Below, piece after piece: positions 7,328 to 14,900 of a stretch of 64,000 nt of DNA. Made by a program: the position numbers and the translations under genes. The stretch is from Paraphysomonas bandaiensis (taxonomy: Eukaryota; Protista; Chrysophyceae): positions 1 to 64,000 of the forward strand of contig CBFFRP010000295.1 in the NCBI GenBank assembly GCA_965644295.1, in the 5' to 3' direction. Below the pieces are notes generated by a model. The model had not been told where the DNA came from. It searched no databases and was given only the letters and a program-made list of their open reading frames with translations. Each line of letters starts with the position of its first letter. Positions within the stretch are counted from its first letter, which is position 1.

Positions 7328-9139
7328 TTATGTCATGAAACGTTTCAGTGCCCTCTGACCCGGTGGAAGATTGGATGTGGCTTCTTCTTGCTTTTGTGCC
7401 TTTTCCCTGGCCTCTTGTTGCCGTTTTAGTGCATCTCTCAGCTTGATCTACACACACTTGAATAAGTAATGTCAAGACAATGCGAATATATCTAACCGTT
7501 TGGGCGTCTATCACATTCTTCTGCTTACGACGTAGTTTAGCTGAAATTTTATTTCTTCCACGCTTTTTATCACGCTCCTGCGAAGTGTGAGCATAGGTCA
7601 AAAGGAAGAAGCAAAACATTTACCTTCTTTTCTATGACTTTAGCATTAGCATTGACAAATACATCTTGCTGCTCAACTCTCAAAGTGTCCTGATCCTTGT
7701 CAACTGTGCCCACAAAGGAAGCGTCTATACGACATATAAGTTTCATAAGATAGACACAAAAATATAATCTTACCGAGTCCAATCATTTCGTGGCTGAGCT
7801 TTGTCAATAGAGATTGGATCTCGCCTTCTCTCCTCTGTTTCGGGTTGGCATATGGATTGTTTTCAAACGTGTCAAAGTTCGCCTCTCCAGCTCCAGGAAC
7901 AACAATCGAACTCACCCCGTGGGAGTGACCAGCGACCAGTACGTCTTCAAATGGTCGGAACTTAACACTGTGTAGAGAGATACTGGACGCCAAGACCTTC
8001 TTCGAGGCCACAGCCCCTTCACCAGCGACTCTCGCACCAGTACATTTCACTTCGTGCTGCAAGTACGTGACATCCACCGGCCTGGTGAAGGCATCTTTCA
8101 GAATCTGTATCTCTCGCCCAACTGCCATGGCAATGAGGCCAGTATCACTAATGTCAAGGGAAACCGCTGGTCGCCTCGGTTTATAGGCATGAAGACAGCT
8201 GAATTTTCTTAGGTCCCAAACCTTCATGTATCCATCCAAACCAGCGGTGGCCATGTACCGGCCCTCTACGTCTACAGCAACATCCGTAACCGGACTTTTG
8301 TGACAGAACATGCTGACCAGGGCGCGCCCTGCCGCCGGGCTCCAGAGGGTTACGACGCCGTTGGCATGTCCTACATGAGAAACCGCATTGACAGGGTTGT
8401 GTTTGAGAACACGGGAAGGGCCGTGTCCAGTGGAATATCCAGCCACAAACTGGCCAGTCGACACATCATGCCACTTAATCCAGCCAGAGTGACCAATTGA
8501 TGTAAGCAAGAAGTGATAGGGGAGAAAGTCAAGCTTATATGGCCGTTCATGTCTACGCATGCAATGTAACTCCACTCCTTTGGCATCATATATATACGCA
8601 TATCTCTCCTGAGCTACCGCAAGGAAAGTTTCATTGTGAAGAAATTGGGCATCGTGCACATCTTGCTGTAGTTGAAGCTCCATGCCAACATTCATCTTAT
8701 GACAGTCCATAGTTGCCACGTGACCCTTAGACCCACAAAAAATCATATGGCGACCATTTCTGCTGTAACTCGCACGGTAAGGACCGAAATTCGTCAGTCT
8801 AAGGTCCATGATATTTCGCCCAGTATTACTATCAACATGCTGGCGGAGGTCCTTCTGTTTGAGTTTGAAGGTTTTAACGCCATTATCCATCTCAATGTAG
8901 CCAGCATCTGCAGGAAGGAGTACTTCCGTATCACCGGTGGCTTTGGCGGACTCAACAATCTGCTTATTAGTTTCTTCCAAAGTTTTGCGAAGCTTCTTGG
9001 GGGCATTTTTCTTTGGGCGAAAGTTTACAGTCCCGTGGGCATACTTTTCAATCATCTTCTTATTCTCACGCTCCACGGCACTCTGTTTATCTGTGCGAGG
9101 CCGCTTTCGACTCTTATTATTTTTCGATGGTTGCGACAT
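7328..9139 (-). CDS. WDR46: WD-repeat SSU processome protein UTP7/WDR46 (BING4)
   Basis: LLPADAGYIE, FGPYRASYSRNGRHM, LDFLPYHFLL, HVGHANGVVTLWSP, VPGAGEANFDTFENNPY..KQRREGEIQSLLTKL (BING4CT); 3' exons after short introns. Confidence 0.95.
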
Positions 9140-9187
9140 AGCTCTGAGTACAAAAAATAGTTCAGATACAGTACTAGCATATTGTGC

Positions 9188-9331
9188 ATATGTCAACATC
9201 CGCTACGGCCCAGACATTCATAATGATCCATTTTAGATCGAAATGCTGGGTGCTTTTAGAGTATGTTACTATACGCTACATCCAAATTCAGTACTCACAC
9301 AATATCAGAAAGTACCGCAGTACGTGCAGCG
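9188..9331 (-). ncRNA. Box H/ACA snoRNA, copy 5 (last 5'-UTR intron, acceptor AG at 9145-9144)
   Basis: Same fold; the intron ends TTTTTTGTACTCAG|AGCT-ATG. Confidence 0.82.
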
Positions 9332-9501
9332 AATCAAATTATAAACAGGTGGTGTACGTGTACGTGGTTTACTATACCTGCTGCTTGTTGAGGTAGAATC
9401 TTAAACCGGAGCTATCAAGAGAGATCTGTCAATTACTACATAGTCAGTACATATTACGCAAAATGAATAGTGTACAACTATAGAACTATAGCATATTGTA
9501 C

Positions 9502-9645
9502 ATATGTCAACATCCGCTACGGCCCAGACATTCATAATGATCCATTTTAGATCGAAATGCTGGGTGCTTTTAGAGTATGTTACTATACGCTACATCCAAA
9601 TTCAGTACTCACACAATATCAGAAAGTACCGCAGTACGTGCAGCG
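9502..9645 (-). ncRNA. Box H/ACA snoRNA, copy 4
   Basis: Same sequence and fold as copy 2. Confidence 0.82.
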
Positions 9646-9815
9646 AATCAAATTATGAACAGGTGGTGTACGTGTACGTGGTTTACTATACCTGCTGCTT
9701 GTTAAGGTGGAGTCTTAAACCGGAACTATCAAGAGAGATCTGTCAATTACTACATAGTCAGTACATATTACGCATAATGAATAGTGTACAACTATAGAAC
9801 TATAGCATATTGTAC

Positions 9816-9959
9816 ATATGTCAACATCCGCTACGGCCCAGACATTCATAATGATCCATTTTAGATCGAAATGCTGGGTGCTTTTAGAGTATGTTACTAT
9901 ACGCTACATCCAAATTCAGTACTCACACAATATCAGAAAGTACCGCAGTACGTGCAGCG
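9816..9959 (-). ncRNA. Box H/ACA snoRNA, copy 3
   Basis: Same sequence and fold as copy 2. Confidence 0.82.
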
Positions 9960-10129
9960 AATCAAATTATAAACAGGTGGTGTACGTGTACGTGGTTTAC
10001 TATACCTGCTGCTTGTTAAGGTGGAGTCTTAAACCGGAACTATCAAGAGAGATCTGTCAATTACTACATAGTCAGTACATATTACGCATAATGAATAGTG
10101 TACAACTATAGAACTATAGCATATTGTAC

Positions 10130-10273
10130 ATATGTCAACATCCGCTACGGCCCAGACATTCATAATGATCCATTTTAGATCGAAATGCTGGGTGCTTTTA
10201 GAGTATGTTACTATACGCTACATCCAAATTCAGTACTCACACAATATCAGAAAGTACCGCAGTACGTGCAGCG
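10130..10273 (-). ncRNA. Box H/ACA snoRNA, copy 2
   Basis: Same fold; basal stem variant GCUGCA/UGUAGC keeps pairing through G-U. Confidence 0.82.
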
Positions 10274-10442
10274 AATCAAATTATAAACAGGTGGTGTACG
10301 TGTACGTGGTTTACTATACCTGCTGCTTGTTAAGGTGGAGTCTTAAACGGGGCTATCAAGAGAGATCTGTCAATTACTACATAGTCAGTACATATTACGC
10401 ATAATGAATAGTGTACAACTATAGAACTATAGCATATTGTAC

Positions 10443-10587
10443 ATATGTCAACATCCGCTACGGCCCAGACATTCATAGTGATCCATTTTAGATCGAAATG
10501 CTGGGTGCTTTTAGAGTATGTTACTATACGCTACATCCAAATTCAGTACTCACACAATATCAGAAAGTACCGCAGTACGTGTAGCAT
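10443..10587 (-). ncRNA. Box H/ACA snoRNA, copy 1 (5'-most)
   Basis: Hairpin 1 GCUACA..CGGUACU/AGUACUG..UGUAGC; H box AUAGUA; hairpin 2 AACAU..CCCAGCAUUUCGAUC/GAUC..GAAUGUCUGGG..AUGUU; ACA box followed by UAU; about 145 nt; intronic. Confidence 0.85.
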
Positions 10588-11924
10588 TAATATCAATAGA
10601 AACAATCATGCATAATGTATGAAATTACCTGAAATGTCTTGTAGTGATCTATGATGTGAGTGATCTCTTGTAAGTGTTTAATGTATTGAATGTCTCGTAG
10701 AGTTATTGTCAAGACATGTTTAATTGAGTGGTCGACAAGAAGTGGAAGTGATTTGGAGAAGTCACAAAAATAGTCCGGTTTTGGGGACTAAAAATGTCGA
10801 TATTTTATAATCTTGATATCAAAAACTGTGCACACCAAGCTGTACACAATTAAAAAACTCAGAATATCCAGATTTTTATACTCTCATGCAGGTTTTGGGC
10901 TTTTACCTCTTGTACACAACGCGATATCTACAGTAGATATCTGGATATGCACATAGAGTACTGCTGTATACACTGTGTGCTAGCTAGGTACAGCAGGACA
11001 TGCATGCATGCATGGTTGTATCTGTACATCGGATCCAACAGCAGTGCAAAGATATGCATATGGAGTTATGGATACGATATTAGAGCAACACTGCATGACA
11101 TATAAGGTCTCGAACGTCATTAGACCAATCAGTTGACTCAGCGGATGCTGGTATGCTTCCAGTTGCTCGAGTTCGTTTGTTGGATAGGGAGTCATATGTG
11201 GGCGCTTCTTACTCTACAAGCGTCATATATGTGCAGTGTATAACTGTTGCTAACAACTTTGTGCAGATTAAATCCAATTCACAATCAATCTTTTCTATAT
11301 TACGAAGAGTCGTTCGAGGAGGAGTCGCTGCGTGATAACTCCAAAACTCCAGGCTTCCAGTGTGTCAAGACAGTGAGTAGCATTTCCAAGTTAATACTCT
11401 CTCCGGTGAGAAAATCTATGTAAGATAGTGTGCTTTGTTTCTTCACTATTAGACTGGATGGGCTATATCGCTGTATGTGTCACTATAAGTCAGGGCATTT
11501 TGCAGTTGCTCACAAATTTGTTTACTTACTTAATTCAATAGTGTTCAGTGAATATACAGTAAAGAGATAGAAGTATAATATTACGGCTTAATAAATGTTT
11601 TTACAGATTCAATAATAATTGGTAAACCATAGAGACTTTGATGTCACAACGACATGCCTATTAAATTTAATAGTCTAACAACGTCTTGATTCTAAGTTGA
11701 TCTAAGTAAATTGTGAATGAATGCACAATGCAACCATATATTGTCGCTACAATGAGAAATTATATTATATATTTGAAGTGTGATATATACTAAGGTAAGA
11801 AGAAGTATTCGTAGGTGGACAAAGTGACTCTGATCAATCACATGTATATCATATATTTAATACACTTATACTACTGTGGAGTACACTATATCTAATAGTA
11901 CTAAATTAAATACCACAGCAGAAT

Positions 11925-14900
11925 CTAAGCCAAGCCGAAGCCCTGTGAGTGTTCCAATGCCAGAAGCAATCTTTCACGCAGCTCAGCAACAGATGTATAC
12001 GAAACAGGTAAATCTAAAATATTAAAACAAGTGTGCGCTGCAGGCAGTGCGTTGGCACCCTGACTGGTCGGTTGTATGGTCAATCTACCAACAGTAATGA
12101 GAACACAAAGTAGATATATGTTGGGTTCAGTACCGCATATTTTTTATACCACCAATAGGCACTCTATCTGAAGCGCTGACAAAGAAGAGGAAGCGACGCT
12201 GATCAATGACAGAGAGTGTCCCTAGAGTTTCCTGTAACGGCATCAGTTGAAACCATAGCTGAAAAACAGATTGTCACTAACCCAGAACATGACCACAACA
12301 GGGTGTGTGTCACTGAAAACACCTAGGTATGTAGTATTTTGGCGGAGCATTGTTATATCTCCGACGTCCGGGCTCCCACATATCACATGTTCTATCTGCA
12401 ACGCGAAGTGAACAACAGCACAATTTCGCCATCACGGATGTATTACCTCGGTGTGGGTACAAAGCTCCAACGCAGGAGTATGCAAAACAACTTTCAGACC
12501 AGATATGAAGTCGTGTATAGCAGTTCTGCAGGATCCATGTAGCGCATGTCGCACAAATAGGTCTACAAACTCCTTCCTGTTTCCTCGGTCAACGTATATA
12601 TCCTGTCCGTCTTCCTTGAGATCAATAAACGCGGGACGGCCTATCTGCTCGGTCCCGTTGTCCAGTAAGGGGTTGGCGGATGCTGCAAAGGTTGCCCCAA
12701 AAATATCTGCCAGGGAGCACCCATCTTTATCAAAGTCTAATATGATTTGCAGACTGTTAGCAAGGCCAGAATCTGCCGCCCATAGATCCTCCATGTTCGG
12801 CTATTCAGATGAATAAATTCTTATCAAGTACAAGGCAGGGACGCACTCACCTCTCTTCCATAGAAGAGCTTGTACACTACCGGGACAATGGGGAGATTAA
12901 CTAAAATCCCATTATAACATGCCAACCCCACCAGAATACCCAACAAGAATTCGTCAGGAAACTCCTGTGCGTTCCCTGTAGCATGCATTTCGGTACGAGT
13001 GAACCAGAGTTGCTCGCCATGTATACCACAACTGTGAAGCGTAGGCGAAAATGAAATAAACTCTCGTACCGCCAGAGTTAGTAACTCCTTCGAAAGTCCT
13101 CCCTCATCGACTCCTTCTTCTCCTTCGAACTCCACACTACGCAGACACGACGCAAATTTAAACGGTTGGTATGAAGTGCTGGTACAGTCGCAGTAACTAT
13201 ACCTTAGTGGGAGCAAAAACACAGAAGGATCATCAGAGAGTATCTCGCATATCTTGGAAAGTAGACTTGGTAGCAAACGTTGGCGATCTACGTTTAGATG
13301 CATACCGACCTTAGGGGTTGTTGTATCTTCCCCAAGAGGCGAAAATATAAATACACCGCGAGGCATAGGTCGACCAGTGCTACCTGACTGCAAAACATAT
13401 TTGTTTGCGAATTTTACAACCTGCAAAATAACATAATGGACCCAGAAACGCACAATGAAAACAACGAGAATACCTGCTGCTGCATTTGTTGCCGGAATTC
13501 GGATCTAATAATTTCATTCTTAGCTTCCACTGGAACCAAAAAGGGATAGGAAAAGAAATTGAATACTCTCGATACATCCGTTGTTTTATACTTGTACCAC
13601 TCTGTGTGTATGTTTAAAGCCTTCGATATGGTGACATTATAGAATAGATTTGGAGGCACGATCTTCGCCTCAGAGTTACAGGCAAATAGACTGTCCATCA
13701 CAAGTACCACAGGTGTGGGGTCCAAATTTGTTGCATGACTTTCGAGAGTGAATGATAGATACCCCTGCAAAACAGACAGAATGCGTGCAAAATGCTCCGA
13801 TGGGAAATACTTTAGCCAACCGAAAAACATGACACGGTAGGACTTAGGAATGGCAAGTATGCCCGACACAAGCTATGAAAAAATCAATCACAAACTTCAG
13901 ATATCACTGGATAATGCTTACCCGCTCTAATGCCACATGAAACAGCTCTGGCTTGAGAAGAAGAGGGTTCTCAAGGACTATCAGAAATACGTACAGATTC
14001 TCGGCAGTGTCAAACTGGCAGTCGCGTAGTTGCTCTGTAACTAGTAGCGTAGCTCGTCCAAGTGTATTAAGGATTTTATCGCAGTTGGAAGAGAGTATCA
14101 ATTGATAAGTCTCGCGCACCGCCTGCAGATCAAGCTCTATAGAGGTTCGAACAGACGAGGTGGGTTGCCCCGATGTTAGGATATCGGTAGCTCGCCTCTC
14201 AACACGGAAAGATGCATTCAGCGCAGCAATAGAAGAAAATGACTCCGCCACCATTTCTCGCACTGTCTGAAGCGTGGCTTTGCTTTGGTTGATGGTCCAT
14301 CGCTCTATGGCTAATGCTAGGGCAGCGCGATTTACTGACGGAAGAGATTTCCTACCGGCGTCGCCATGTGACGACAACTGCACGAAACTATGCAACGCGA
14401 GACAATTCGAGTGCACTGTAGTAAATCGCACATTATCCCTGGTGGAGTGAAAAGACAGAAGTGTTGGGCGAGGAGTGCTGTGGAAGTTTCCCAGCCCGCA
14501 TTGTCCACTGGTATTAAGCCCCATCGCATAAACAGCCTCAGTCCTGTCGTCCGGGTCACCTCTCGCCCGACACACCACGAGAGAATGTGCACTTCCACAG
14601 GTTGCGTCAATGACCTGTTTATCCCGCAGACGATCCACAACCACGGGTGATGGGAATGTGCGCCCCCCATTTGAGGAAGCATCAGAGCTTTCCTCGTGGC
14701 CTTGTCCCAGTTGACCGTGGCTGTTGGAACCAAAAGCAAATAGCAGACCCTGAGGGTGGGAAATGGCAAGCGAGTGATGCCCCCCAGCTGACACCTTTAC
14801 ACAAACTGCCGCCTTCAGTGCTCGCACAATTTCTGGCCTAAGCCTATTCTTGCGGTCTCCAAGTCCAAGTTGCCCCTGACTGCGGCGCAGCTTCACATAC

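Follow-up and report, generated by a model that had tools for sequence, protein, structure and literature searches.

Genomic organization of the UTP7 locus

We analysed a 64,000-nucleotide stretch of the genome of the chrysophyte Paraphysomonas bandaiensis (assembly GCA_965644295.1, contig CBFFRP010000295.1, positions 1 to 64,000, hereafter the window), in which a tandem array with a period of 314 bp lies on the minus strand directly upstream of the gene UTP7/WDR46, and each unit of this array very probably encodes a box H/ACA small nucleolar RNA (snoRNA) of around 143 nt that is released from an intron within the non-coding UTP7 leader. The minus-strand open reading frame (ORF) downstream of the array was assigned to UTP7/WDR46 by its BING4CT domain (Pfam, E 3.6e-31) and by its homologues, which carry the name U3 snoRNA-associated protein 7. 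The protein is 100% identical to an MMETSP transcript, homologues at 60-79% identity are found in marine metagenomes, and the more distant named matches are brown-algal and chrysophyte (Ectocarpus, Ochromonas), which places the organism among the marine stramenopiles. The first coding exon occupies positions 7774-9143 (minus strand), with joints at 9143 and 7724>7774 found in three RNA runs; the ATG at 9139-9137 lies four bases into this exon, and the mRNA codes for complete UTP7. Near the 3′ end of the coding region, a 49-nt GT..AG intron (7773-7725, minus strand) is likewise removed in three RNA runs.

The public RNA runs consist of assembled contigs and as such report splice joints. Within the region whose splice layout was examined with them (7600-11400), one contig of a polyA marine metatranscriptome (X11, record 2) joins positions 10674-10629, 10366-10320, 10053-10006 and 9143-8772 with zero mismatches, and every stretch that it skips is GT..AG on the minus strand. 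Further contigs splice 10320 straight to 9143 (X16) or 9692 to 9143 (X8), and short X8 and X16 contigs cover mini-exon to mini-exon junctions at a depth similar to that of the mRNA. Some transcripts skip mini-exons.

The resulting leader starts with exon 1, of which the 3′ part is mapped (10629-10674, minus strand; X11 record 2, joint 10629>10366), and continues with short exons on the same strand, i.e. the non-coding mini-exon 1 of 47 nt (10320-10366; joints 10629>10366 and 10320>10053 or 10320>9143 in X11 and X16), mini-exon 2 of 48 nt (10006-10053; joints 10320>10053 and 10006>9143 in X11, plus the mini-exon junction contigs of X8 and X16) and mini-exon 3 of 48 nt (9692-9739; joint 9692>9143 in X8), which is identical to mini-exon 2, making its placement ambiguous. 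A fourth mini-exon of 48 nt is predicted at 9378-9425; it shows four differences from mini-exons 2 and 3, shares the splice-site sequences of the others and has no joint in the RNA contigs. A search of the leader exons, including exon 1, for an ATG found none. The leader intron region (9144-10628, minus strand) is accordingly divided into the introns 10628-10367, 10319-10054, 10005-9740, 9691-9426 and 9377-9144, each of them GT..AG and each holding one snoRNA. The distance of the snoRNA to the 5′ splice site is 43-47 nt, and that to the 3′ splice site is 76 nt, or 44 nt for the last intron. The sequence-only reading of this DNA had described an intronic array upstream of UTP7. While the intronic position is shown directly by the spliced RNA contigs, the array does not sit in one intron: it is spread over five introns separated by four mini-exons of 47-48 nt, with one snoRNA in each intron. 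The repeat unit is a spliced mini-exon of 47-48 nt plus an intron of around 266 nt (262 nt for the first intron).

Tandem Repeats Finder reported a single array at 9175-10585 of the window (period 314, 4.5 copies, 98% matches, no indels), which lies on the minus strand and has a first unit of 313 bp. With one unit as query against the whole 62.6-Mb assembly, the only matches were the five array positions, and a covariance model of the RNA gave five hits on the 64-kb window, every one inside the array. Copy 1 extends over 10443-10585, i.e. 143 nt from the basal-stem G to three nucleotides after the ACA box, or 145 nt when an AU extension to 10587 is included. It is followed on the minus strand by copy 2 (10130-10272), copies 3 (9816-9958) and 4 (9502-9644), both covariance-model hits, and copy 5 (9188-9330), which is located in the intron ending at the UTP7 coding exon. 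As had been proposed, around 4.5 units yield five snoRNAs and the array edge coincides with a snoRNA 5′ end, with position 9188 being the third nucleotide after the ACA of copy 5. Copies 2 to 5 are identical, and copy 1 departs from them at RNA positions 4 and 108 (counted here and below from the first basal-stem base of the 143-nt RNA). At position 4, copy 1 has A instead of G, by which an A-U pair replaces the G-U pair in the basal stem, in line with the earlier remark that the variants GCUACA and GCUGCA both stay paired. Variable sites within the array number 7 in the 48 nt of the mini-exon, 2 in the 143 nt of the snoRNA and 2 in the 123 nt of the intron flanks; the mini-exon is the most variable part, which fits a leader exon whose splice sites alone are needed.

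An array of this kind could also be an ordinary minisatellite or an assembly expansion, with a unit that folds like an H/ACA RNA by chance. The 98% identity of the units speaks for this explanation, as do the modest folding energy of the window copy and the lack of an Rfam match, both of which are discussed below. However, the units differ at defined sites, including a mini-exon of 47 versus 48 nt, and one independent marine transcript joins exon 1, mini-exon variants 1 and 2 and the coding exon with zero mismatches. As two different mini-exon variants occur together in the X11 contig, which comes from an independent sample, the assembler expansion of a single unit is excluded: the array is genuine, and several units occur naturally. 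Considering that the snoRNA part is also conserved and covarying in seven other UTP7 loci (see below), this explanation is already largely refuted, and we regard it as extremely improbable.

Architecture of the encoded RNA

The layout that had been described for each unit, i.e. a minus-strand RNA of around 145 nt with the order hairpin, AUAGUA, hairpin and ACA, is present in the sequence. The 5′ hairpin consists of the basal stem GCUACA/UGUAGC, an internal-loop pocket of 7 + 8 nt and an upper stem of 8 pairs. It is followed by the H box AUAGUA at RNA positions 59-64 (10522-10527 in copy 1, minus strand, with an equal offset in the other copies), by a second hairpin with a pocket and, directly after this 3′ hairpin, by the ACA box at RNA positions 138-140 (10446-10448 in copy 1, minus strand). 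The tops of the pockets were expected around 16 nt from the H box and 14-15 nt from the ACA box, and we measured 16 nt (15 nt in the related loci L176 and L179) and 15 nt, respectively.

In copy 1, the 5′ pocket strand of the 5′ hairpin is CGUACUG (10573-10579, minus strand), a guide element complementary to CAGUACG of the large subunit (LSU) rRNA, and the 3′ pocket strand is AAUUUGGA (10536-10543, minus strand), located 16 nt before the H box. The 3′ hairpin has a 5′ pocket strand containing UAAAAGCA (10506-10517, minus strand), kept in six of seven related loci, and the 3′ pocket strand CCGUAGCG (10456-10463, minus strand), located 15 nt before ACA.

Conservation and covariation in other UTP7 loci

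The DNA around UTP7 homologues was searched with blastn, nhmmer and then the covariance model. The RNA was found directly upstream of the UTP7 start codon at seven further UTP7 loci, which stem from metagenomes and sequencing runs; a single copy is present at five of these and two copies at the other two. The single-copy loci are L017/L018 (UTP7 protein identity 79%; DNA identity 74% over 138 nt), L019 (72%), L020/L021 (84%, partial, 60% of the query), L178 (79%, partial, 58% of the query) and L179 (73%). Two copies each are present in L176 (73%) and in L022 (61%), the latter detected with E about 2e-6 and kept outside the seed. In addition, one weak copy (E 0.002) was seen at L024 (62%), and no copy was found upstream of the gene in the more distant UTP7 locus L023.

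When the whole 314-bp unit was used as query, the alignment was limited to the snoRNA part, with conservation ending at the edges of the RNA. In L017 and L019, a single GT..AG leader intron surrounds the RNA. The two tandem copies of L176 (867-1187) and L022 (3588-3902) are separated by 35-40 nt that contain no AG, which places both copies in a single UTP7 leader intron. The expectation of a single copy in the UTP7 leader of related species was therefore borne out as to the place, and as to the number in five loci, with two loci having two copies instead. The H/ACA gene has been duplicated repeatedly, in L176 and L022 without a mini-exon. The claim of a local amplification in this lineage holds, as relatives have one copy or two in this position versus five here: the copy number rose in this lineage from 1-2 to five, and the copies are near-identical.

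The conserved positions are those expected for a guide RNA. The H box reads AUAUUA, AUAGCA or ACAUUA in the orthologues, with L178 deviating in the last base (ACAGCG). ACA is invariant in alignment A4 (nine rows, i.e. the window and five related loci), AUA in L022 and unclear in L024. In the 5′ hairpin, GUACUG of the 5′ pocket strand is kept in five related loci, altered to AUACUG in L022 and lost in L020, and the leading AAU of the 3′ pocket strand is conserved. The conserved pocket strands of the 3′ hairpin contain UAAAAGCA and CCGUAGC, with GGCCGUAGC of the 3′ pocket strand being invariant in A4. A metagenome pattern scan with the invariant 3′-pocket motif returned only GC-rich bacterial sequences, mostly with one conserved 42-nt spacing, and the other snoRNA motifs were in none of them.

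Covariation was evaluated on a 15-row alignment (13 distinct sequences), which is model-based and fitted to the structure and therefore flatters the pairing figures. In this alignment, 82.6% of the cells are paired in the four helices versus 35-42% in slid controls, 17 of 26 pairs have changes on both sides versus 3-10 in slid controls, and the covariation score is 0.444 versus at most 0.154 in slid controls; none of 500 shuffles reaches 0.444. An alignment made by MAFFT only contains six compensatory pairs among four sequences. Based on the orthologues, the covariation, the conserved boxes and the conserved pocket strands, we consider the H/ACA identity of the RNA to be established short of biochemistry, and the comparison shows that the RNA has long resided in the UTP7 leader intron of this stramenopile group.

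A conserved, structured RNA at this place might also be a cis-element of the UTP7 leader intron, with a splicing or autoregulatory role, that looks like an H/ACA RNA without being released as a guide. Such an element would explain why the RNA is always located in the UTP7 leader, why the strongest conservation adjoins the ACA box near the 3′ splice region, and why no small RNA is seen in the RNA contigs, which are assembled contigs only. However, the H/ACA grammar is conserved, i.e. two internal-loop hairpins, a hinge ANANNA, an ACA after the second hairpin and spacings of 15-16 nt. In addition, conservation falls on the single-stranded pocket strands and covariation on the stems, as in guide sequences, the 5′ pocket fits one rRNA site in all six species compared, and the distance to the splice sites varies between species. 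We therefore consider a cis-element very unlikely and prefer an H/ACA guide RNA.

Around the UTP7 loci, the local gene order differs: in L017, L019 and L020/L021, the upstream neighbour of UTP7 is a divergent Methyltransf_16 gene, whereas the neighbour in the window looks HECT-like (ORFs 12432-13453). A weak box C/D-like match to snoU30 (E 7, far under the gathering score; CUGA followed by a U run) is located at 10839-10890 (minus strand), just downstream of TATAAAA and ahead of UTP7 leader exon 1, and probably reflects chance or a part of the promoter region. The ORFs called across the array are artefacts. The mechanically called 499-aa ORF (7700-9199) is a read-through of both the 49-nt intron and the last leader intron, and the ORFs of 90-97 aa (MSTSATAQTF...) found once per unit on the plus strand (9504-10404) are a by-product of the repeat. 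The plus-strand 97-aa ORF was rejected as a gene, having no Pfam match and orthologue indels that are not multiples of three.

Predicted rRNA targets

Target scans covered the full small subunit (SSU) rRNA, the 5.8S rRNA and around 2.7 kb of the LSU rRNA. In the assembly, the rDNA is fragmentary and scrambled, being spread over contigs C196, C551, C525, C543, C545, C516, C653, C68 and C188 (loci L007, L014-L016 and L051-L055). SSU copies are shortened to 1669 and 1526 nt versus the full 1796 nt, contig C525 has an LSU fragment fused directly to the SSU 5′ end, and the cmscan LSU hit on L016 is stretched across around 640 nt of non-rRNA sequence.

The 5′ pocket pairs with LSU GAUU[UU]CAGUACG through 7 Watson-Crick pairs on one flank and, on the other, 4 pairs plus 3 more past one mismatch. 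The site GAUU[U]UCAGUACG was the top site for the 5′-pocket guides of all six species (window, L017, L019, L178, L022 and L024). For the window guide it led the other sites clearly and scored 28 versus a shuffled mean of 20.4, with 2 of 300 shuffles reaching 28. The predicted pseudouridylation target of the 5′ pocket would be the third U of GAUUUUCAGUACG in domain V of the LSU rRNA. By our own indexing of the yeast 25S rRNA, we take this U to be the position of yeast Um2724. The yeast psi2735/snR189 site was considered as the equivalent of the 5′-pocket target and rejected, as by our own indexing the predicted U lies 11 nt upstream of it, at Um2724. The indexing was anchored on the modified positions listed in PMC5699541, where Um2724 is a 2′-O-methylated U of the yeast 25S rRNA.

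For the 3′ pocket, the best site in six of six species was GCGACG[U]UGCUUUUU (GCGACG[UU]GCUUUUU), with 5 of 6 pairs on one side and 6-8 pairs on the other; in L024, the guide A that is mismatched elsewhere is a U, giving a G-U pair. We put the chances at about even that the target of the 3′ pocket is the first U of GACGUUGCUUUUU, close to the peptidyl-transferase centre. By our own indexing, we take this U to be U2854 in yeast, U2844 in Arabidopsis and U4401 in human 28S rRNA. Human U4401 is a known pseudouridine attributed to SNORA21 (PMC8351944 supplement; PMC5552212).

Within the rRNA scanned, no site fits the 3′ pocket with strictly canonical geometry. The LSU site ...GACGG[UU]GCUAGUGGG looks close and was rejected, as it offers only 4 + 3 pairs. 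A canonical target, GCUACGG-UN-UGCUUUU, was also sought in the whole genome as a degenerate pattern and was not commoner than its reversed control (178 versus 161 hits). Hits present in several copies proved to be dispersed repeats that match no RNA family, and the best single hit, on contig C173, is outside known RNA genes, with a 5S rRNA gene 1.3 kb away. One family of dispersed repeats, which is at least several hundred bases long and shares the motif CTTCTGCGGTATG(T/C)TTTTT, occurs on contigs C75, C87, C123, C143 and C202 (L037-L041) and has no Rfam match.

The target predictions also bear on whether a genuine H/ACA RNA might have another job, i.e. that of a small Cajal body-specific RNA (scaRNA) acting on small nuclear RNAs (snRNAs), or of a processing snoRNA like U17/snR30. 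In the window, L017, L019 and L178, a UGAG resembling a Cajal body (CAB) box is found in the apical portion of the 5′ hairpin, the host gene belongs to the SSU processome, and the rRNA target of the 3′ pocket is not statistically secure, all of which would suit such a role. On the other hand, UGAG is not conserved across the orthologues, being replaced by GUGAU in L176 and L179 and by ACAUAU in L022; it lies partly within the upper stem, and none is found in the loop of the 3′ hairpin, for which reason an H/ACA scaRNA was rejected. A U17/snR30-like role was rejected as well, as no corresponding pairing to the SSU rRNA or the spacers was found: the pocket strands are without long complementarity to the SSU rRNA and the external and internal transcribed spacers, in a scan that left out the snRNAs. 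There is also no Rfam match to the U17/snR30 or scaRNA families, and an LSU site of canonical geometry clearly fits the 5′ pocket. Another job for the RNA is therefore improbable, if marginally less so than a cis-element, and guidance of rRNA pseudouridylation is the preferred reading.

Weighing of the H/ACA assignment

Several points weigh against the proposal that each unit encodes an H/ACA snoRNA excised from the UTP7 leader and guiding rRNA modification. Folding with RNAfold, as had been suggested as a check, recovered the two-hairpin layout of the window copy, but its energy is not significantly better than that of shuffled sequences (z = -1.59). The orthologue L019, folded alone, gives the canonical hairpin-hinge-hairpin-ACA structure with z = -4.1. 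Because the fold of the window copy is not above chance, the case for more than a chance resemblance rests on the comparative data. The scoring against Rfam that had likewise been suggested gave no match: no family was found in the unit at the gathering score or at E up to 10, including SNORA21, snR189 and U17/snR30, and four orthologous loci were without a family match at E up to 5. In the available RNA runs, i.e. assembled contigs, a discrete small RNA, its ends and its level are not visible. Support for a count of five copies comes from the assembly, from the occurrence of distinct unit variants and from the transcript joining two different mini-exons.

As for the targets, around 700 nt of the LSU rRNA are absent from the assembly and lay outside the scan, and searches of the assembly with conserved motifs did not recover them. 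The 3′-pocket pairing leaves one guide base unpaired on each side of the pocket top and includes a G-A mismatch; among 300 shuffled guides, 52 match its score. The U predicted for the 5′ pocket is absent from the pseudouridine lists for yeast, human and Arabidopsis (PMC5699541; PMC8351944 supplement). The target segment is conserved and heavily modified, but the modification of this U itself would be lineage-specific or unrecorded. Regardless, the splicing data, the orthologues and the covariation lead us to retain, with high confidence, a snoRNA of around 143 nt in each unit.

Comparison with known snoRNA genes

By its structure, H box, pocket spacing and bipartite 5′-pocket complementarity to rRNA, the RNA can be classed among the box H/ACA RNAs, outside every Rfam family. 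As in canonical intronic H/ACA snoRNAs, the order is hairpin-H-hairpin-ACA, the pockets lie 15-16 nt from the boxes, there is one RNA per intron, and the host gene is tied to ribosome production. In contrast to the canonical cases, the 5′ pocket points to a U that is not among the listed pseudouridines of yeast, human or Arabidopsis. One canonical example is human SNORA21, an intronic H/ACA snoRNA in an RPL23 intron (PMC5552212). The best 3′-pocket site is the equivalent of its target U4401 by our own indexing, with a pairing that is imperfect and not significant, whereas no sequence or covariance-model similarity to SNORA21 or any Rfam family is detectable.

Regarding the gene arrangement, two-copy loci such as L176 and L022, with both H/ACA copies in one leader intron, resemble plant-type polycistronic intronic clusters. 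The window differs from such several-per-intron clusters in that the spacer of 171-172 nt contains a spliced mini-exon, giving each copy its own intron. Tandem modules of an exon and a snoRNA-bearing intron are known from the mammalian SNORD116/SNORD115 (SNURF-SNRPN) and SNORD113/114 loci, and multi-intron hosts from GAS5 and UHG. Like the SNORD116-type modules, the unit in the window is a short non-coding exon plus an intron with one snoRNA, spliced head to tail (three RNA runs), and the exons are the least constrained part. Unlike them, the modules of the UTP7 locus are spliced onto a coding exon, so that the host is not non-coding, and the RNA is H/ACA rather than C/D, has five copies and has at least one pocket with a predicted ordinary rRNA target. 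The arrangement of exon and intron in modules is thus already known, and is found here in the leader of a coding ribosome-biogenesis gene.

Proposed mechanism and implications

We propose that, after splicing and debranching of the leader introns, exonucleases would trim each intron down to the RNA protected by dyskerin/Cbf5, Nop10, Nhp2 and Gar1, and that the resulting H/ACA ribonucleoprotein would isomerize two LSU uridines. The module, i.e. the snoRNA, the 3′ part of the intron, the mini-exon and the 5′ part of the next intron, would have been amplified recently to five copies in this lineage, which may raise the yield of guide RNA per UTP7 transcript and couple it to a ribosome-biogenesis promoter. 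An increase of around fivefold in guide dosage per host transcript had been suggested from the sequence, and can so far only be inferred. Where mini-exons are skipped, a single lariat contains several of the copies, which may or may not mature, so that fivefold would be the maximum.

Considering the two-copy introns of L176 and L022, it is tempting to speculate that a spliced mini-exon arose from the spacer of duplicated H/ACA genes, by which a two-per-intron arrangement turned into one-per-intron modules that were then amplified. We hold this only tentatively, rating it as somewhat less probable than its negation. If true, exonization would have been caught in the act of rendering tandem amplification productive for an intronic snoRNA that is processed by exonucleases, and the locus would be a protist counterpart, with a coding host and an H/ACA RNA, of the mammalian SNORD116-type loci. 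The series from one copy through two in one intron to five modules of exon and intron bears on how snoRNA genes are amplified and how mini-exons originate.

For this poorly sampled branch of eukaryotes, the analysis points to an uncatalogued H/ACA guide with a stable genomic address, the UTP7 leader intron, and to two concrete predicted pseudouridylation sites in LSU domain V. It also suggests that apparent 'satellites' in the introns and leaders of this genome should be annotated as guide-RNA arrays.

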